In this document: positions 3,763 to 63,883 of the stretch, piece after piece
Layout of the letters: each line of letters begins with the position of its first letter
Numbering within the stretch: the stretch's first letter is position 1
Virus record (IMG/VR): IMGVR_UViG_3300024239_000011
Coordinates: 479,036 to 543,035 of that record
Length of the DNA: 64,000 nt
Direction: 5' to 3' (one strand)
Translations under genes and position numbers: made by a program
The notes under the pieces: model-generated
Told to the model about the DNA's origin: nothing
The model's input: the letters and a program-made list of their open reading frames with translations, nothing else
Databases searched by the model: none

Positions 3763-3817
3763 CCAAATCTCTGCCAAAAACGGATGCAGCATTTTGCACC
3801 TCCCCGTCAACTTAAAA

Positions 3818-3904
3818 CCACTAAATAAGAACGGTAATCGAATCGGACCAACGATTCGAAACCTTCGCGGAGACAAAGGCTGTCCCGTTCTCTATTTAGC
3901 GGAG
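3818..3904 (+). ncRNA. Endonuclease-leader three-way-junction RNA, copy A, with flanking inverted TAAATA boxes
   Basis: P1 AGAACGG/CCGUUCU, J UAAU, P2 CGAAUCG/CGAUUCG, J AAA, P3 CCUU/AAGG, J CUGUC. Homologous to copies at 37.3 and 63.7 kb. Confidence 0.75.
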
Positions 3905-3911
3905 AAAAATC

Positions 3912-4835
3912 ATGCCTAAGGGCAATCCCTTTACAACAGAAATGTTCATCGAGAAATGTCGCCATATTCATGGTGATCGTTATGATTATTCTCTAGTAGA
4001 GTATAAGAACGCACAGGAGAAGGTCAAAATTATTTGCCTCGCCCATGGTGTGTTTGTGATGTACGCGAAACATCATACACGTGGGCATGGATGTCCTGAA
4101 TGTGGTAAAATTTCTACAGGAAAGAAGAAAAGACTTGATTTGCCGGAATTTCTAACGAAAGCCAAATCAATTCACGGTGATCGGTATGATTATTCATTAG
4201 TCGTCTACGAGACTGCTAAAGTACCCGTTGAAATTATTTGTCCGATCCATGGAAGTTTCTGGCAAACCCCTGATTGTCACATTGGTTTAAAAGAATCAGG
4301 TTGTAGCAAATGCAGCGGTATGTTCAAAAAAGATACACAGTATTTTATCGAACAAGCTAAATTGATACATGGTGATACTTACGATTATTCAAAAGTTGTT
4401 TATCAAACCGTAAAAGATCAAGTAGAAATTATTTGTCGAATGCATGGAAGTTTTTTACAAACCCCGGATAGTCATCTAAATACAAAAAGTGGATGTCCGC
4501 GATGCGTTTCTCTAATATCTGATCAAGAAACTGCATGGTTAAATCATCTTGGAATCCCCAATGATCCCACTCATAGGCAGGTATATCTCAGGCTAGATGA
4601 TGGGTCGCGAATCCACGCAGACGGGTATGTTGCGTCAACTAATACCATTTATGAATATTATGGTGACTATTACCACGGGAACCCAAATGTGTATGATCAT
4701 CGAAAAATGAATACGACGTGTAAAAAGACCTTTGGTGAATTACACGAGCGTACCATAAAACGAGAAGAACGGATATTACGCTCCGGGTACAAGCTTGTAA
4801 CTATGTGGGAAGCACAATGGAAGAGTGGCGGCTAA
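3912..4835 (+). CDS. Free-standing putative homing endonuclease: three Zn-binding repeats plus a PD-(D/E)xK/Vsr-like domain
   Basis: Three FIxKA..IHGDxYDYS.V.Y....V.IICxxHG.F.Q....H....GCxxC repeats; C-terminal IHADGY...YEYYGDYYHG...LVTMWE. Confidence 0.75.
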   Translation: MPKGNPFTTEMFIEKCRHIHGDRYDYSLVEYKNAQEKVKIICLAHGVFVMYAKHHTRGHGCPECGKISTGKKKRLDLPEFLTKAKSIHGDRYDYSLVVYETAKVPVEIICPIHGSFWQTPDCHIGLKESGCSKCSGMFKKDTQYFIEQAKLIHGDTYDYSKVVYQTVKDQVEIICRMHGSFLQTPDSHLNTKSGCPRCVSLISDQETAWLNHLGIPNDPTHRQVYLRLDDGSRIHADGYVASTNTIYEYYGDYYHGNPNVYDHRKMNTTCKKTFGELHERTIKREERILRSGYKLVTMWEAQWKSGG

Positions 4836-29018: not shown

Positions 29019-29416
29019 ACAGCACGCTCACGATGTAAGTCAATAGTGAGAGAGCGATATAAAAAGAAAACATATAGACGCCATATGCGACGTTTGTAGG
29101 CATAACGACCTCGTGATTGGATGTTGCATTGCAACATATTTACCGATGTTTGGTTATACGGAGCCATGCTAAATACGCATATGTATAATCCAGAAGAATT
29201 CCCCTATTGTGCCTACACATCATCCGGATCACTGGTATTCGAATATGCACGCCAAGATGGTAGTCATATCGAAGTGTTGGATCGTGGTCAGCTACGATAT
29301 TTCTTTGTGGATGATTTCGTATTGAAATTGAAGAAACGTGAAAATGATTCATCGACTGGATAAATCAAAAAAGATATTGCAGTCAGATGCTAAAGTTGCT
29401 AAATAGGTTTAGTTGT

Positions 29417-29727
29417 TCCGGCGTAGCTCAGTTGGTAGTAGCATCTGACTGTAGATATGCAGCTTCCATCAGTAATGATGGTCGAATAACTGGGTGAATT
29501 CGGGGAAACCCTAGTAATAGGGCAATCCCGAGCCAAGCCAGGGGAAGGTCGTGGTACCCTGGAAGGTGTAGAGACTAGGTGGTGAGGAACCAATCCAATA
29601 AACCACCCGCGAGCGCCCAGCACCCTAACAAGTAATGTTGAGGGTGATGATATAGTCCACTTCCGATAGTAATATCGGGTTAAGTGTAATCAGAGTGTCG
29701 CAGGTTCGAGTCCTGCCGCCGGAACCA
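29417..29727 (+). tRNA. tRNA-Asn(GUU) interrupted by a group I intron (exons 29417-29452, 29687-29727)
   Basis: Splicing restores TCTGA-CTGT|TAA-TCAGA; TCCGGCG/CGCCGGA acceptor, CCA end. Confidence 0.9.
29453..29686 (+). mobile_element. Group I intron (234 nt, no ORF)
   Basis: P GAATTCGGGGAA, Q AATCCCGAGC, R GTAGAGACTAGG, S GATGATATAGTCCA; terminal G; GNRA-capped P2 and P9. Confidence 0.9.
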
Positions 29728-36306: not shown

Positions 36307-36386
36307 GATCACTTCAGTAGCTCAACGGTAGAGCAAAAGTATGATAAACTTTCCGTGCGGTTCAAATCCGCCAGTGATTTTCACCA
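36307..36386 (+). pseudogene. Degenerate tRNA-Ile(GAU)-like element
   Basis: Intact D arm (GCTC/GAGC), AAAGT-ATGATAA-ACTTT anticodon arm and GGTTCAAATCC T arm, but the acceptor stem GATCACT/AGTGATT is offset by 4 extra nt, with extra nt before ACCA. Confidence 0.6.
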
Positions 36387-36407: not shown

Positions 36408-36484
36408 GGACCCTTAGCTTAGTGGTCGAAAGCGCCGGTCTCATAAACCGGGGATCGTTGGTTCGAATCCAACAGGGTCTACCA
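36408..36484 (+). tRNA. tRNA(CAU), Ile2-like
   Basis: GGACCCT/AGGGTCT acceptor with C4-G69 and C5-G68, CCGGT-CTCATAA-ACCGG, A73, CCA. Lacks the initiator hallmarks. Confidence 0.85.
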
Positions 36485-37303
36485 AATCACGGGGTGCGAG
36501 AAATCTAGCACCCCGTTTGCTATTCCGGCGATGTCTTCTGCACGCAAAACTGCTAATTTCCCGCCCATTGCTTTCCATTTGCACTGGTCGCGATCCGGCT
36601 GATGTTGATGCCCTTTGACCTCGATATAGAGGTCGTATTCCGGTAGGTAAAAATCTGGAAAGTAGTGTCTCGTAGTACCGTTCCAAATATATGGTATTGG
36701 TTCTATTTGATTAGTCCATGTAATGCCACATGCATCAAGTAGTTTCGCAGTATACAGTTCCCATTTCCCGGTCAGGATGGAATTCCCGTAGTAAATTTTC
36801 TTGACCCGACCGTTAACATTTGCTGCACAATATGACGATGGATATTTCTCCACCGTTTGACGCATGTAACGACTGTGGATTTGCCGTCTTTCGGTAGTCC
36901 AAAACGTCTCGGATGCTTTCCGCGCACTGGCGGACAACTTAGCTCGCGTTTCTGCACTGATTTCTACGGTACGCCCTTCTTCGACTGCCTTTGTATGCTG
37001 GTTGCCATGGTGTCCATGTTTGTTGAAACATGCTCGACAACAATATTTCGGCTCTGGCTTTTGCGGTCGGATAATAGCTTCGAATGTTTTCCCACATACA
37101 CACACGGTGTGTTTTCGATGGTATTTGTGGTCTTGGCTGCGATTGGGGTTTAACCCGGCATTGGTTAATGCATCATTCCACGACCCGAACCGTTTTTTGT
37201 AGGTCGATGCGTTGGTAAAGTCACGCATGGCGGGTGTCCGTCCATGTTCTGCGTGAAATGCACAAAGTGCGGCCAATAATTCTTGATCTGTGATTTTGCA
37301 CAT
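36479..37303 (-). CDS. Free-standing putative homing endonuclease (HE-associated repeat, Zn finger, TnsA-like PD-(D/E)xK)
   Basis: TPAMRDF...YKKRFGSWNDAL..AGL; CVCGK..CCRAC; YFPDFYLPEYDLYIEVKG; start MCKITD at 37303 with RBS GGAGA. Confidence 0.8.
   Translation of the reverse strand: MCKITDQELLAALCAFHAEHGRTPAMRDFTNASTYKKRFGSWNDALTNAGLNPNRSQDHKYHRKHTVCVCGKTFEAIIRPQKPEPKYCCRACFNKHGHHGNQHTKAVEEGRTVEISAETRAKLSASARKASETFWTTERRQIHSRYMRQTVEKYPSSYCAANVNGRVKKIYYGNSILTGKWELYTAKLLDACGITWTNQIEPIPYIWNGTTRHYFPDFYLPEYDLYIEVKGHQHQPDRDQCKWKAMGGKLAVLRAEDIAGIANGVLDFSHPVIW
36489..36518 (+). terminator. Hairpin terminator after the tRNA pair
   Basis: ACGGGGTGC/GCACCCCGT followed by TT. Confidence 0.6.
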
Positions 37304-37310
37304 GATATTT

Positions 37311-37403
37311 CTCCCGATAAATAGCCCGGCGGGACAGCCCTCTCTCCCGAGGGGTTTTGTTGGTGTTCCCGCACCAACGATTACCGCCATTCCTATTTAT
37401 CGG
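37311..37403 (-). ncRNA. Endonuclease-leader three-way-junction RNA, copy B
   Basis: P1 GGCGG/CCGCC, UAAU, P2 GUUGGUG/CACCAAC, AAA, P3 CCCCUC-GGGA-GAGAGGG, CUGUC; flanked by the CCGATAAATAG inverted repeat. Confidence 0.75.
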
Positions 37404-37413
37404 AGTCTGATAG

Positions 37414-38121
37414 ATGACGTTGGCATTTGATGCTATTGCGGTGCGTCGTTATGTGGACGAAACTATCATTCGCCCGCATGTTTACGAAGACTCTGGGCGT
37501 CCAAAGCTCGAAACCGACCCATGTTATTTTCATTATATAGACGCTATGTGTTTTATATCGCGGGTATCGGAAGGGTTGGACATCATCGCGAACGGGTTTT
37601 CCGATGAAGACATACGTCCATTCACAACCGCACGCGATTTTTACAAGGCATTGGTTGGTAAGCTTCCGCTAACTTTTTATGCTCAGTTGGATGGCGCCAA
37701 TAAACTGCTCAAATTGTCCACGGACGATACAACCGGGAAAGAAATCACTATTGGTTCCCGGCGGTATTGGATGGTCGAAAATATTCGCGACCAAGTGCCG
37801 TATCCGTCTGCGGCGAGCCGGGCAAATGTTTACGAGCGTATCATCAAGTGTGTAACTCGGGATATGTCGGCTCGTTCCCAGATGGGCGACCAAGGCTGGT
37901 TTGATGGTATTGAAGACGCCATTCGTCGGCTCGATCAGTCAATCAAAGACACTGCTGATTTTGTGTTCCAAACTCTGACCGGTATTGACCCAAACAAGGT
38001 CATGGTGTCGATAAACGAGGATGGTACATATAATCGGTTGGTTCCTTATTTGGTCAACCGCGATGCAACGATTTCCCCATATGTAAGCAATGGACATCGG
38101 TTAATCGCCTATGAGTTTTGA
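37414..38121 (+). CDS. Hypothetical protein
   Basis: 235 aa ORF. Confidence 0.7.
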   Translation: MTLAFDAIAVRRYVDETIIRPHVYEDSGRPKLETDPCYFHYIDAMCFISRVSEGLDIIANGFSDEDIRPFTTARDFYKALVGKLPLTFYAQLDGANKLLKLSTDDTTGKEITIGSRRYWMVENIRDQVPYPSAASRANVYERIIKCVTRDMSARSQMGDQGWFDGIEDAIRRLDQSIKDTADFVFQTLTGIDPNKVMVSINEDGTYNRLVPYLVNRDATISPYVSNGHRLIAYEF

Positions 38122-50469: not shown

Positions 50470-53274
50470 ATGTCCGACAATTTTAACGTCCTGCTGCCGA
50501 AGACTGCTTTCCCACTCCACCGCAAGCCTGCGGATGAGGTGGCAATCCTCGTGCAGATGGAAACTCACCACAAGGACATGAGCCAGGACAGCGTTCAGGA
50601 CGCCCCGGTGTTTGTGTTGCATGATGGACCGCCATATGCAAACGGCGATATCCACATCGGGCATGCGCTGAACAAGATTCTCAAGGACATCGTGGTTCGG
50701 TCGCAATACGCACTCGGGCACAAGATTGATTTTCGCCCTGGTTGGGATTGCCATGGGCTACCTATCGAATGGAAAGTCGAGGAAGAGTGGCGCAAGGCGA
50801 AGAAAGACCCGCGTGCTGACGTGGTGGCTTTTCGTGCCGATTGCCGCGCTTACGCTCAACGTTGGCTCAATATTCAGCGCGAGCAGTTCAAGCGTCTGGG
50901 TGTTGCCGCCAATTGGGACAATCCCTACACAACCATGGCGTATGCGCACGAAGCGCAGATCGTTTCGGAACTGCACACGATTGCCAAGAGTGGCGCATTG
51001 TATCAGGGTTACAAACCCGTTATGTGGTCGCCGGTCGAAAAAACCTCTTTGGCGGAAGCTGAAGTCGAATACGAGAACGTGACCACTACCAGCGCCTATG
51101 TCGCCTTTAAGGTCGATGGCGAGGGAATGACGATCTGTGGTTCGCCCGTCCATATGCTGATCTGGACCACCACCCCGTGGACCCTGCCTGGAAACGAAGC
51201 TGTCGCGTTCTCGCCATCGGTTTATTACACGATGCTTCGCAAGGTCGTGGATGGTGAAACGTCCTACTTCGTCGTGGCGGCTGACCGTGCCGACGAATTG
51301 TGTAAGCTTGGTCTGGACAGATTCGGGGATGACTCGTGGTTGCCAAATTGTGGCTCTTGGTTCCGCGACAATATCAAATTAGTCCACCCGCTGTCTGGTA
51401 AGACCGTGCCTCTACTGCCTGCGGATTTTGTGACCGCCGAAACGGGCACGGGTTTGGTTCATATCGCGCCCGGTCATGGCAAAGATGATTTTGACCTGGG
51501 TCAGCGTCACAACCTCCCGATCTACAGTGTTGTTGATGACAACGGCTGCATGACGGACGCTGCCCCGGAAGGTGTGTGCGGGTTGCACGTCTACAAGGCG
51601 AGCGAAGCCGTGCTGGCGGTATTAGGTGATGCGCTGGTAGCAACCAAGACGCTGACCCATGAATACCCGCATTCCTGGCGGTCGAAGAAGCCGGTGATCT
51701 ATAAGGTCGCCCCGCAGTGGTTCATCCATGTGGGTGACGACCTGAAGGAAACCGTGCGTAAGGAACTGAATAACGTCGAGTTCTTCCCGCCGCAGGGTCG
51801 CAACCGTATCACCTCCATGGTGGAAAGCCGTGGTGACTGGTGTGTGTCGCGTCAGCGCATGTGGGGCGTTCCCATGATGCTGCTGGTCCGTGATGACGGT
51901 AAGTTGATGGGTCATGAACCCGACGACAATGCCTTGTGTCGAGGGATCGAATTCTTTGAGGCGCGAGCTTCGGAGTTCAATGAGTGGGTGGTGGCTCGCA
52001 TCAACGCCGAGGGCTGTGATTGGTGGCTCACCGAGAGCGTCGAAGAAATCACCCATCGCATGAACGTCGAAACTGGCAGCGGGTGGTTCCTGGCGGGTGA
52101 GCATGCTCGGTTCACCAAGGTGACCGACGTGTTGGACGTGTGGTTTGACTCGGGCTGCACCCATGCGTTCGCCATCAAGGATCGGGCAAATCTTTATCTG
52201 GAAGGGTCTGACCAGCATCGTGGTTGGTTCCAGTCCAGCCTTCTGGAGTCGGTGCTGACCACCGGGCGGGCGCCTTACGATGCGCTGCTGACCCACGGTT
52301 TCGTTCTCGACCATAAGGGCGAGAAGATGTCGAAATCCAAGGGTAACGTCGTACATCCCGAAGATGTGATCAAAAAGCACGGTGTTGATGTGCTGCGTCT
52401 ATGGGTTGCCGCGTCCAACTACCATGATGATCTGCGTATCGGTGATCAGATCATGGAACGGGTGGCGGATTCCTATAAGCGCATTCGCAACACCCTGAAA
52501 TGGTTGCTTGGCAATCTGCGAGATCATGACGGTGGGCGTTTCATCCAGTACGACACCCTACCGTCGCTGGAAAAGTACGTCCTGCATCACGTTGTGACGA
52601 CGAACGAAATCGTGAAGAAGGCGTATCGCGAATACGACTTCAACACGGTCTACCGTGCCGTGTACGGGTTCTGCAACGAGGTGCTGTCGTCGCTCTACTT
52701 CGACATCCGTAAGGATCGTCTGTATTGCGACGGTGCGAATGATCCAGCGCGTGAGCAAACTATGGCGGTGTTGGAACTGGTGACCGACAATCTGTTGGGT
52801 TGGTTGGCTCCGATCACGCCGTTTGCCGTTACCGAAGCGACGCCGCTGTTCTATGGCGAGCAGTACGACCAGTCCATCCATCGTTTGGTTGACCTTCCTA
52901 TGGAATGGCAAGATCACGCACTTGCGTCCCATTGGGACATGGCGTTGACGGTGCGTGCGAAGGTTTTGGAGGCGGTTGAACGCAAACGGAAGCCGAAGGA
53001 CGAGCGTGGACCTGATGACATTGGTGCGTCGTTGGAAGCTTCGGTATTCGCAACGCTGAGCCAAAATTACATGGATGCGCTAAAAGACATCGATATGGCG
53101 GAAGTGTGCATCGTGTCGCACTTCGATGTGAACAGGTCGGTAGGTGCGCAGCCCGAAGGCATCGAGATCACAGTCCACCGCGCTAAGGGGCACAAATGTG
53201 CCCGATGCTGGAAGGTGGTTCCGGATATTGAACATCTTTGTGATCGCTGTGCGGCGGTCGAAGGGGAGAATTGA
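50470..53274 (+). CDS. ileS: Isoleucyl-tRNA synthetase (type 1, C-terminal Zn finger)
   Basis: DGPPYANGDIHIGH, GWDCHGLPIE, WTTTPWTL, GTGLVHIAPGHG, DWCVSRQR, EGSDQHRGWF, KMSKS, KCARCW..LCDRC; sigma70 promoter at 50408. Confidence 0.97.
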   Translation: MSDNFNVLLPKTAFPLHRKPADEVAILVQMETHHKDMSQDSVQDAPVFVLHDGPPYANGDIHIGHALNKILKDIVVRSQYALGHKIDFRPGWDCHGLPIEWKVEEEWRKAKKDPRADVVAFRADCRAYAQRWLNIQREQFKRLGVAANWDNPYTTMAYAHEAQIVSELHTIAKSGALYQGYKPVMWSPVEKTSLAEAEVEYENVTTTSAYVAFKVDGEGMTICGSPVHMLIWTTTPWTLPGNEAVAFSPSVYYTMLRKVVDGETSYFVVAADRADELCKLGLDRFGDDSWLPNCGSWFRDNIKLVHPLSGKTVPLLPADFVTAETGTGLVHIAPGHGKDDFDLGQRHNLPIYSVVDDNGCMTDAAPEGVCGLHVYKASEAVLAVLGDALVATKTLTHEYPHSWRSKKPVIYKVAPQWFIHVGDDLKETVRKELNNVEFFPPQGRNRITSMVESRGDWCVSRQRMWGVPMMLLVRDDGKLMGHEPDDNALCRGIEFFEARASEFNEWVVARINAEGCDWWLTESVEEITHRMNVETGSGWFLAGEHARFTKVTDVLDVWFDSGCTHAFAIKDRANLYLEGSDQHRGWFQSSLLESVLTTGRAPYDALLTHGFVLDHKGEKMSKSKGNVVHPEDVIKKHGVDVLRLWVAASNYHDDLRIGDQIMERVADSYKRIRNTLKWLLGNLRDHDGGRFIQYDTLPSLEKYVLHHVVTTNEIVKKAYREYDFNTVYRAVYGFCNEVLSSLYFDIRKDRLYCDGANDPAREQTMAVLELVTDNLLGWLAPITPFAVTEATPLFYGEQYDQSIHRLVDLPMEWQDHALASHWDMALTVRAKVLEAVERKRKPKDERGPDDIGASLEASVFATLSQNYMDALKDIDMAEVCIVSHFDVNRSVGAQPEGIEITVHRAKGHKCARCWKVVPDIEHLCDRCAAVEGEN

Positions 53275-62421: not shown

Positions 62422-63726
62422 TCAACAGCTTAGCAAGACATTGACAAAGATAACGTCCCCGGAGGAAAATTCCTGATTGGAATGATCGTCGGACGACACT
62501 GTTGTATGAGAAATAGAAACACGGTAATCCTCGTACAATTGTTCGAGTGTTTTCCCACATTGTGTCATTTTGGACTGATTTTTAGATGCGGGTAGCATTT
62601 GAAGATTAGTCCAGTGCGCAATGATTTCTGGTGGTACCCCGTTTCGAAATCCTTCCGCCTTTGAGAAAATGTGATCCAAGTGGTTTTCGCGATTGCGCGG
62701 AAGCCTATCTGGATTGATTTTATAGTAATGATCACGAAAAGATTTGTTGGTTAATGACGTAACCAAGTCACAGTATCGGCGCCAAGGGTCTTTAAGGGAT
62801 GGATCGGTCCACTCCCCATTATTGATTCTCGCCGTGGCAATTTTCGCCAACACTATTGGAGAACGGCTAGGATTATCAACTCCATATTTTTCTAGGTAAG
62901 CTTCAATTTTCTTATGATGTATACGGTCGTATTCGTCAGGCGTTTTCGATCTCCATGTTGCGGCATTTTTATCTTTAACCGGTTGTGCGCTCATGGGATG
63001 GGATGTGCCATAGTTCGCTTGCCATGTCGCTTTGGCTTTTTCATAAAATTCTGGCACTTGGAGTGGATTTGCAGTGCCGTATTTTTCAAGCATGGTGCGA
63101 CGAGCTTTCGACATGTCTTGTGGGTTGCCATTAGGGTTTCCGCCTTTACCATACCCACAGTATGGACATCCGTGACCTCGCATATGATGTCCTGCTTGTT
63201 GTTCAAACATACCATGCTTTTGACATATAATTTTTACCTTGTTATGGTTGCCAGTATAGTCCACTAATGAATATTCGTACTCATCACCATGTACTTCTTT
63301 AGCTTTTTCTATGAAACTTTCATTGGTATGCGCAATGTTCTTTCCGTAACATTTTTGGCAGCCAGAACCATTAAGATGATTTCCGGCAAGTTGTTCAAAC
63401 ACGCCATGGTGCCGACAGGTGATTTTTACTTTCTTATGGCGACTGGTATAGACGGTATTTTGATAATCGTATTCATCGCCATGTACAACTTGTGCTTTCT
63501 GAATAAATTGTTCGGTGGTCATTCCTATTTTTTGTTCTTGCGCACATTTATTACAACCATTACCACGCAGATGTGAATATGGAACCTGCTCGAACATTCC
63601 ATGTTGAGGGCATATAATCTGTATTTTGGTTGTACTGTTTTTATAGACGGTTTCTGTATAAGAATACGTATTACCGTGGCGCGCTTTCGCGAGCGCGATG
63701 AATTCTTCTGTGGATTTTATAGCCAT
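62422..63726 (-). CDS. Free-standing putative homing endonuclease: Zn repeats, KYG-x-NP repeats, HNH-like C-terminus
   Basis: Three FI.KA..VHG..YDY...IICxxHG.FEQ....H..G.GC repeats; KYGTANP/KYGVDNP; NHLDHIFS...WTNLQML...N..K. Confidence 0.8.
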   Translation of the reverse strand: MAIKSTEEFIALAKARHGNTYSYTETVYKNSTTKIQIICPQHGMFEQVPYSHLRGNGCNKCAQEQKIGMTTEQFIQKAQVVHGDEYDYQNTVYTSRHKKVKITCRHHGVFEQLAGNHLNGSGCQKCYGKNIAHTNESFIEKAKEVHGDEYEYSLVDYTGNHNKVKIICQKHGMFEQQAGHHMRGHGCPYCGYGKGGNPNGNPQDMSKARRTMLEKYGTANPLQVPEFYEKAKATWQANYGTSHPMSAQPVKDKNAATWRSKTPDEYDRIHHKKIEAYLEKYGVDNPSRSPIVLAKIATARINNGEWTDPSLKDPWRRYCDLVTSLTNKSFRDHYYKINPDRLPRNRENHLDHIFSKAEGFRNGVPPEIIAHWTNLQMLPASKNQSKMTQCGKTLEQLYEDYRVSISHTTVSSDDHSNQEFSSGDVIFVNVLLSC

Positions 63727-63735
63727 TTATTTCCT

Positions 63736-63822
63736 GCAATAAATAGAGACGTGGGACAGCCCAGGTTCCTGTGCCGGGTTTTTCGGTGTTGGACGCACCG
63801 AAATTACCACCTCTATTTATCC
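63736..63822 (-). ncRNA. Endonuclease-leader three-way-junction RNA, copy C
   Basis: P1 GUGG/CCAC, UAAU, P2 UUCGGUG/CACCGAA, AAA, P3 CCCGG/CUGGG, CUGUC; flanked by the ATAAATAGAG/CTCTATTTAT inverted repeat. Confidence 0.75.
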
Positions 63823-63883
63823 AAATGTGGCATTGACATTGAGTGTTTTTATTGCTACGTTGTAGCAAATCATAGGAGACGCC

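Follow-up and report, generated by a model that had tools for sequence, protein, structure and literature searches.

We identified a compact three-way-junction element with an essentially invariant core at the 5' ends of selfish nuclease genes in phages. In most of the elements that we compared, one of its loops matches the ribosome-binding or start region of the adjacent gene. The element occurs three times in the window, the 64,000-nucleotide stretch analyzed here (positions 479,036 to 543,035 of IMGVR_UViG_3300024239_000011, a 543-kb phage contig), and in at least 45 distinct uncultivated-phage loci, and it has no match in Rfam 15. Our preferred interpretation, which is tentative (probability of about 0.42) and rests on sequence alone, is that the element holds down translation of the neighboring nuclease gene.

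A covarying three-way junction with an invariant core

A preliminary description, made from the sequence alone, had aligned the leaders of three endonuclease genes starting at 3912(+), 37303(-) and 63726(-), and had noted the blocks GG-UAAU, AAA-CC and GG-CUGUC-CC separated by stems that differ in sequence but keep pairing. Our analysis confirmed this observation. Each leader comprises a closing stem P1 ending in GG/CC, UAAU, hairpin P2, AAA(A), hairpin P3 closed by CC/GG, and CUGUC, followed by the nuclease ribosome site and ATG, and P1, P2 and P3 pair in all three copies with different sequences. As had been stated, GGCTGTCCC occurs nowhere else in the window: it is found exactly three times, and one-mismatch matches are at chance level (10 found, 11 expected). 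A composite pattern (TAAATA, gap, CTGTCCC, gap, TATTTA) hits only these three places, with 0 expected in shuffles, and a covariance model built from 38 relatives scores the window copies at 85.0, 72.6 and 59.3 bits (E 3e-17 to 5e-11) and finds nothing else in the window. The features of the three copies, with transcription starts predicted from a promoter rule, are as follows.

3822-3827 (+): copy A, TAAATA box (T4-type late-promoter-like) facing nuclease A, with a box-to-GG spacing of 5 nt; predicted start of the nuclease-sense RNA at 3833, the first G of GGUAAU.
3829-3890 (strand not specified; working strand probably minus): copy A junction core (72.6 bits), with P1 3829-3834/3885-3890, UAAU 3835-3838, P2 3839-3845/3852-3858, AAA 3859-3861, P3 3862-3865/3876-3879 and CUGUC 3880-3884.
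3864-3877 (+): copy A P3 loop region carrying a copy of the nuclease A ribosome-binding region (14 nt, 2 mismatches against 3896-3909).
3893-3898 (-): copy A, second TAAATA box, facing into the junction; predicted start of the opposite-strand RNA at 3887.
3896-3914 (+): translation initiation region of nuclease A (GGAG 3901-3904, ATG 3912-3914).
3912-4835 (+): nuclease A gene (307 aa; DUF723 and treble-clef repeats), antisense to both flanking genes.
37394-37399 (-): copy B, TAAATA box facing nuclease B; predicted RNA start at 37388, with 8-nt spacing, so that P1 is kept in the nuclease-sense RNA.
37328-37388 (strand not specified): copy B junction core (59.3 bits), with P1 37384-37388/37328-37332, UAAU 37380-37383, P2 37372-37378/37359-37365, P3 about 37338-37354 and CUGUC 37333-37337; the plus-strand RNA from 37329 is predicted to fold as the three-way junction.
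37318-37323 (+): copy B, TAAATA box facing into the junction; predicted RNA start at 37329, and the same RNA would run on into the gene starting at 37414.
37301-37317 (-): translation initiation region of nuclease B; an 8-nt stretch (37310-37317) is identical to the P3 loop at 37343-37350.
36479-37303 (-): nuclease B gene (274 aa; HNH_repeat plus a weak endonuclease I-like C-terminus), antisense to tRNA-Met and to the gene at 37414.
63814-63819 (-): copy C, TAAATA box facing nuclease C; predicted RNA start at 63808, the first G of GGUAAU.
63751-63810 (strand not specified): copy C junction core (85.0 bits), with P1 63807-63810/63751-63754, UAAU 63803-63806, P2 63796-63802/63782-63788, AAA 63779-63781, P3 63774-63778/63760-63764 and CUGUC 63755-63759; the plus-strand RNA from 63751 is predicted to fold as the three-way junction.
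63740-63745 (+): copy C, TAAATA box facing into the junction; predicted RNA start at 63751.
63724-63737 (-): translation initiation region of nuclease C; CAGGAA here is identical to the P3 loop at 63766-63771.
62422-63726 (-): nuclease C gene (434 aa; DUF4379 repeats plus DUF7487).

Three points of the preliminary description required correction. The nucleases had been called unrelated, but the N-terminal triple-repeat regions of A and C are 40% identical (E 1e-40), whereas B is unrelated to both. Each copy is also flanked by an inverted TAAATA/TATTTA pair that had not been mentioned. Finally, the argument that a G-U pair (copy C) and a GNRA-like loop (copy B) favor the endonuclease-sense strand does not hold family-wide, since P1-P3 contain 15 G-U and 24 A-C cells and A-C cells are G-U on the other strand.

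Searching viral contigs for the three conserved blocks with free spacers retrieved 108 loci, corresponding to 64 unique sequences, about 49 of which have the expected helices. A partial sample of metagenomes added at least 14 further unique members. Among 38 aligned members, cells with changes on both sides of a pair number 174, compared with 57 in shuffles and 28-45 in slid controls, and P2 alone shows AU, UA, GC and CG at every position. The covariance model recovers 42 members in 483 kb. All members were fetched with patterns that fix at least two junction blocks; we therefore freed one junction block at a time while anchoring on the flanking boxes. No real variant of AAACC or GGCTGTCCC was found, and a single member has UGAU in place of UAAU, all other new hits being unstructured AT-rich chance matches.

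Of the outcomes that had been set in advance as removing novelty, a match to an existing Rfam family was not found. The whole window and 15 loci, searched at gathering threshold, gave only tRNAs, a group I intron, GOLLD and int-alpA elsewhere, and searches of both strands of copy A and of two class II members (see below) up to E = 10 gave only noise of 9.5-13 bits. The junction strands (UAAU, AAA and CUGUC, or GACAG, UUU and AUUA on the other strand) do not correspond to the hammerhead core, which comprises CUGANGA, GAAA and a UH site, and no Rfam ribozyme matches. The element does not meet the definition of purine-riboswitch-like junctions either, as there is no Rfam match and the P2 and P3 loops are not conserved between members. 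In a partial search of bacterial and archaeal genomes, the matches obtained (at least 120) were all chance matches, without any member recognizable by structure. Neither megablast of the locus nor blastn of a member found the element in GenBank phages, although the conserved blocks are too short for BLAST and this result says little. A further 272 kb of phage loci around MazG homologues contain none, and no close syntenic relative of the window's locus A was found for an empty-site comparison.

In the main architecture (class I), an open reading frame, identified by simple ORF calling, starts 24-31 nt after CUGUCCC in most loci. The products include GIY-YIG, HNH, Vsr-like DUF559, DUF723, DUF7487 and TnsA-like proteins, as well as TnpB (OrfB_IS605, Cas12f-like TNB and HTH domains). 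TnpB genes preceded by the element lie in the window's own phage, outside the window (L048:11740-13013 and L060; L numbers designate the loci we retrieved), and in L257, L342 and L361. The element is not bound to one nuclease family, as homologues of nuclease A (12 loci) and most homologues of the L055 HNH gene lack it. A short upstream reading frame from the CUG in CUGUC is in frame in one locus but not in A, B or C, and was rejected.

Predicted promoters and two mirror-image architectures

Class I elements have TAAATA 5 nt before GGTAAT (29 of 45 elements) and TATTTA 6-9 nt after CCC. In the window, TAAATA, often as CTAAATAC, lies 11-52 nt upstream of about 17 gene or tRNA starts, where about 1 would be expected by chance. 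Three genes (15931, 28315 and 47369, all on the plus strand) have the box, 5 nt, then ATG; they are apparent leaderless late genes and fix the start site at 6 nt after the box. This agrees with the T4 late box, which spans -13 to -6, and Aeh1 uses a/gC at positions -13/-12 in place of TA, the form seen here (PMC2988020). From this rule, and in the absence of transcript mapping, we infer that the nuclease-sense RNA starts at the first G of GGUAAU in 29 of 45 elements and so lacks the 5' strand of P1, whereas copy B and about 9 of 45 elements keep P1. The opposite-strand RNA should start 1-4 nt before GGGACAGCC and keep on average 4.2 of 5.2 P1 pairs.

We considered whether the TAAATA/TATTTA pair forms an outer helix (P0) and rejected this reading. 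Pairing is limited to the hexamers, the flanking positions pair at random, and the five elements with a degenerate 3' hexamer and one with none in range show no compensating change on the 5' side. The outer pairing is thus better read as two face-to-face T4-type late-promoter boxes.

In about 30 of 38 class I loci, including all three window copies, the nuclease gene and element are antisense to the surrounding genes. About 11 members lack the TAAATA boxes and have a long P1 of 5-12 bp (class II). In all class II members examined, the element is antisense to the flanking genes when read in the orientation of the preliminary description, and the transcribed strand there is therefore GGGACAG...AUUACC. 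In six independent groups, the gene starting 30-47 nt downstream on that strand is an HNH endonuclease gene: L010, L072, L055/L087/L323, L021, L098 and, weakly, L044. In two others it is a primase or a replication protein. Class II rests on about 10 independent examples found with a pattern that fixed the junction.

Two loci suggest that the element may be resident rather than part of the mobile cassette. L008 (8374-8600) has a tRNA, then the element, then a near-consensus TTGACA-N17-TATAAT promoter on the neighbors' strand, with no nuclease gene, whereas L026 (138-1210) has a nuclease gene inserted exactly between the tRNA and the element. The element can thus exist without the nuclease, and it keeps the short ribosome-site copy. 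About 10 nt beyond the TAAATA box, on the side away from the nuclease, a conserved GTCAA (TTGAC on the other strand) lies at a fixed distance from the element in many loci (for example at window 3807-3811 and 63832-63837). It is a -35 box of an early promoter in some phages, but no usable -10 box accompanies it at window copies A, B or C.

Loop matching to the ribosome-binding region

In class I, the P3 loop carries a copy of the sequence that follows TATTTA, namely the Shine-Dalgarno or start region of the nuclease gene. The longest shared stretch averages 7.5 nt, compared with 4.4 nt for other elements' genes, and is at least 6 nt in 41 of 44 elements. The copied sequence differs from element to element, being GGAG-type, GGUG-type or AGCAGAUG covering the TnpB start codon; in the window the shared stretch is 14 nt with 2 mismatches in copy A, 8 nt in B and 6 nt in C. 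In two groups, TnpB (L048) and L052/L088, the copy covers the start codon rather than a Shine-Dalgarno sequence; at the TnpB genes it reads AGCAGATG and no Shine-Dalgarno sequence is visible. No cis sequence complementary to the loop copy was found. The predicted duplex energy is -11.7 kcal/mol against -6.1 kcal/mol for permuted pairs, and 0 of 5000 permutations reach it.

In class II, the apical loop of P2' is exactly complementary to the 6-7 nt that touch the Shine-Dalgarno sequence of the downstream gene. Nine different sequence pairs are represented and the match coincides with the loop boundaries. At least 6 nt are complementary in 12 of 13 elements, against a null of 0.27, and 3 of 5000 permutations do as well by duplex energy.

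Interpretation and alternative readings

The preliminary description proposed a shared cis-regulatory, protein-binding, self-cleaving or guide/scaffold RNA read on the nuclease-sense strand, and our data support this only in part. A conserved, covarying three-way junction tied to the 5' ends of selfish nuclease genes and without an Rfam match is supported; that the nuclease-sense leader is the working molecule is not supported or is doubtful. A self-cleaving or ligand-binding role is neither supported nor excluded, and a guide-RNA role has no support.

We favor a model in which the working strand reads 5'-P1-GACAG-P3'-UUU-P2'-AUUA-P1', the reverse complement of the strand initially chosen, and in which this RNA of about 55-65 nt presents an apical loop complementary to the ribosome-binding or start region of the nuclease mRNA. 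In the window (class I), the nuclease mRNA would start at GGUAAU without P1, whereas the opposite-strand RNA would start 1-3 nt before GGGACAGCC, keep most of P1 and be able to fold into the junction at its 5' end; its P3' loop could pair in trans with the nuclease ribosome site, and its first 55-60 nt are complementary to the nuclease leader. In class II the same strand lies in the 5' UTR, mostly of HNH nuclease genes, and its P2' loop would pair in cis. The fold, its invariance, the link to nucleases and the loop-to-ribosome-site matching are established by our comparisons, while the transcription starts, transcription of the antisense strand, the identity of the working strand and translational repression are inferred.

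The strand assignment rests chiefly on the junction being identical in both classes only when read on the same DNA strand: were the nuclease-sense leader the working RNA in both, two complementary junctions would have to be invariant, and an invariant junction can only be read on one strand. When the element flips relative to the gene, the loop relation flips from complementary to identical, as expected if the same strand is the RNA that pairs with the nuclease mRNA, whereas at the DNA level the two cases are an inverted and a direct repeat, which have nothing in common. Weaker hints are that the helices are almost purely Watson-Crick, that A-C cells slightly outnumber G-U cells in the nuclease sense, including a recurrent C-A at one P3 position that is G-U on the other strand, and that the predicted opposite-strand RNAs of copies B and C, but not of copy A in its minimum-energy structure, fold as the junction.

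Several points weigh against this model. The start sites derive from a promoter rule and not from transcripts of either strand, the matching loop is P3' in class I but P2' in class II, and six of 45 class I elements lack an exact TATTTA box on the far side. The small number of independent class II examples, two of which precede non-nuclease genes, and the small size of the G-U versus A-C difference also count against it. Both class I RNAs would come from the same promoter type at the same time, which obscures the regulatory logic, and simple antisense pairing does not explain why 12 junction nucleotides are invariant. The class I loop copy can equally be read as a ribosome-site mimic on the nuclease mRNA, and mismatches between the two copies of the ribosome-site sequence were too sparse for their direction to separate mimicry from antisense pairing.

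Such a module resembles several systems. The c4 antisense RNA of phages P1 and P7 (Rfam C4 family) is a small structured RNA whose hairpin loops are complementary to the ribosome-binding region of a gene encoded next to it, and it can be made from the same transcript upstream of its target, as in class II; however, C4 did not match in our Rfam searches, the targets here are nuclease genes and the junction sequence is unrelated as far as these searches can tell. In IS10 RNA-OUT/RNA-IN and type I toxin-antitoxin pairs, face-to-face promoters give two RNAs with complementary 5' ends, and a stable folded antisense RNA limits translation of a selfish or toxic gene. Here, the overlap stops about 10 nt short of the ribosome site, which is instead matched by a separate loop, the antisense RNA would also be the leader of the neighboring gene, and the junction is invariant across very distant phages. 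We regard the element as a new RNA family whose proposed action is a variant of antisense or leader control of selfish genes.

Homing endonucleases and TnpB must be expressed just enough to spread without harming their carrier. A single portable RNA module shared by at least six nuclease families across very different phages, with a junction as conserved as a ribozyme core and a loop retuned to the ribosome site of each gene, would be a general governor for such genes. It would add a family to the catalogue of structured RNAs, offer a natural, easily retargeted translational repressor scaffold and give a marker for mobile nuclease cassettes in metagenomes.

Among the alternatives, the original view, in which the nuclease-sense RNA is a cis-acting leader (riboswitch, ribozyme or protein-binding site) whose P3 loop displays a copy of the Shine-Dalgarno region as a ribosome standby site or decoy, survives best but appears unlikely. 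All 45 class I elements have this orientation directly upstream of the nuclease ribosome site, the loop copy is as well explained by mimicry, the invariant junction suggests a specific tertiary fold, and some elements keep P1. This view is at odds with the predicted loss of P1 in 29 of 45 elements, with class II, where the complementary strand with the same junction lies in the leader, with the lack of G-U enrichment on this strand, and with the two groups whose loop copy covers the start codon.

Less likely still is the scheme of I-TevI, I-TevII, I-TevIII, segB and Aeh1 mobE, in which a late promoter sits in the 5' arm of an inhibitory structure, so that read-through transcripts fold fully and translate poorly whereas late transcripts lack the 5' arm and translate, which keeps a selfish nuclease under tight translational control (PMC2988022). 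The TAAATA box lies exactly where it would cut off P1, and the predicted unpaired probability of positions -15 to +3 is 0.45 in read-through RNA and 0.56 in late RNA, higher in 28 of 39 elements (Wilcoxon p 6e-4). However, a longer RNA alone can give this mild effect, and the ribosome site begins after the last helix and after the TATTTA box, whereas the T4-family structures are simple hairpins whose 3' arm pairs with it. As most class I nuclease genes are antisense to their neighbors, nuclease-sense read-through RNA is not expected, and the scheme explains neither the invariant junction, nor the loop copy, nor class II; the known cases also lack the second, facing promoter box. The "unusual hairpin" of Aeromonas phage 25 seg43 is a plain hairpin and not this element. 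Dassa et al. 2009 (PMC2677866) reported TATAAATA-bearing hairpins upstream of free-standing nuclease genes of several families in "fractured genes" from phage-like ocean metagenome loci, with the late-promoter box in a 5' UTR structure and two conserved motifs on the stem. That paper does not report a three-way junction, an invariant junction or loop matching, and a 2023 catalogue of 8,495 unnamed IMG/VR candidates (PMC10690425) may contain this motif; earlier sightings in either are not excluded. In Rfam 15 and the papers we could search, we found no description of the three-way junction and its invariant core, the two mirror-image architectures, the loop-to-ribosome-site matching or the link to TnpB.

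A catalytic or ligand- or protein-sensing core formed by the 12 invariant nucleotides, with the loop-to-ribosome-site pairing as its expression platform, is not excluded but is similarly unlikely; it would make the element a new small self-cleaving ribozyme or riboswitch class that gates expression of homing endonucleases and TnpB in phages. None of the other readings explains the invariant junction.

A promoter and insulator cassette of the PeSL kind, which would sit at gene boundaries and serve as a recombination point for gene shuffling, with nuclease genes riding along, is also improbable. PeSLs of T4-like phages are stem-loops just upstream of early promoters (PMC4122927, PMC2839356); like the element, they are compound intergenic modules that join a structure to promoters, are repeated within a genome and are found at points of gene gain and loss, and the element lies immediately upstream of such a promoter in L008 and L026. 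Its almost purely Watson-Crick helices would also allow both strands to fold. However, PeSL structures are simple stem-loops with lineage-specific sequence, whereas this element is a covarying three-way junction with late-type boxes and specific matching to the neighboring gene; no T-run terminator is detected at the element, the early promoter is absent at window copies A and B, the 272 kb of other phage loci contain no copy, and loop-to-ribosome-site covariation and an invariant junction are not expected of a terminator. A DNA-level site (homing target, operator or branched-DNA structure) is very unlikely: although the element occurs in either orientation next to nuclease genes, its helices are nearly all Watson-Crick and some linked nucleases resemble junction-resolving enzymes, at least six unrelated nuclease families plus TnpB would have to recognize it, many homologues lack it, and only an RNA-RNA reading unifies the direct and inverted repeats.

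A homologous HNH gene in L366 (560-700) is preceded by a different long-stemmed structure without this junction, whose interior also seems to hold sequences complementary to the ribosome-site region, hinting that loop-to-ribosome-site control of HNH genes has arisen more than once. At window 36311-36379 and 36408-36484 (+), tRNA-Met is called by ARAGORN and Rfam, and a second, weaker tRNA-like hit (39.7 bits) just upstream is not called by ARAGORN; the stop of nuclease B (36479) overlaps the 3' end of tRNA-Met on the other strand, and nuclease cassettes of this kind also sit inside tRNA arrays in L008, L015 and L026. L072 (94-530, minus strand) carries a GOLLD RNA (174.5 bits) with an embedded tRNA, beside a tRNA array and about 3.4 kb from a class II element in a 253-kb phage contig. 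The window further contains a group I intron at 29391-29679 (+) (Rfam 84.7 bits, E 4e-20), in which an insertion of about 80 nt near the 5' end reads like part of a tRNA (D-arm and anticodon-arm-like), and, at 50470-53274 (+), a gene for a 934-aa isoleucyl-tRNA synthetase homologue with 36-38% identity to copies in phage and bacterial records.
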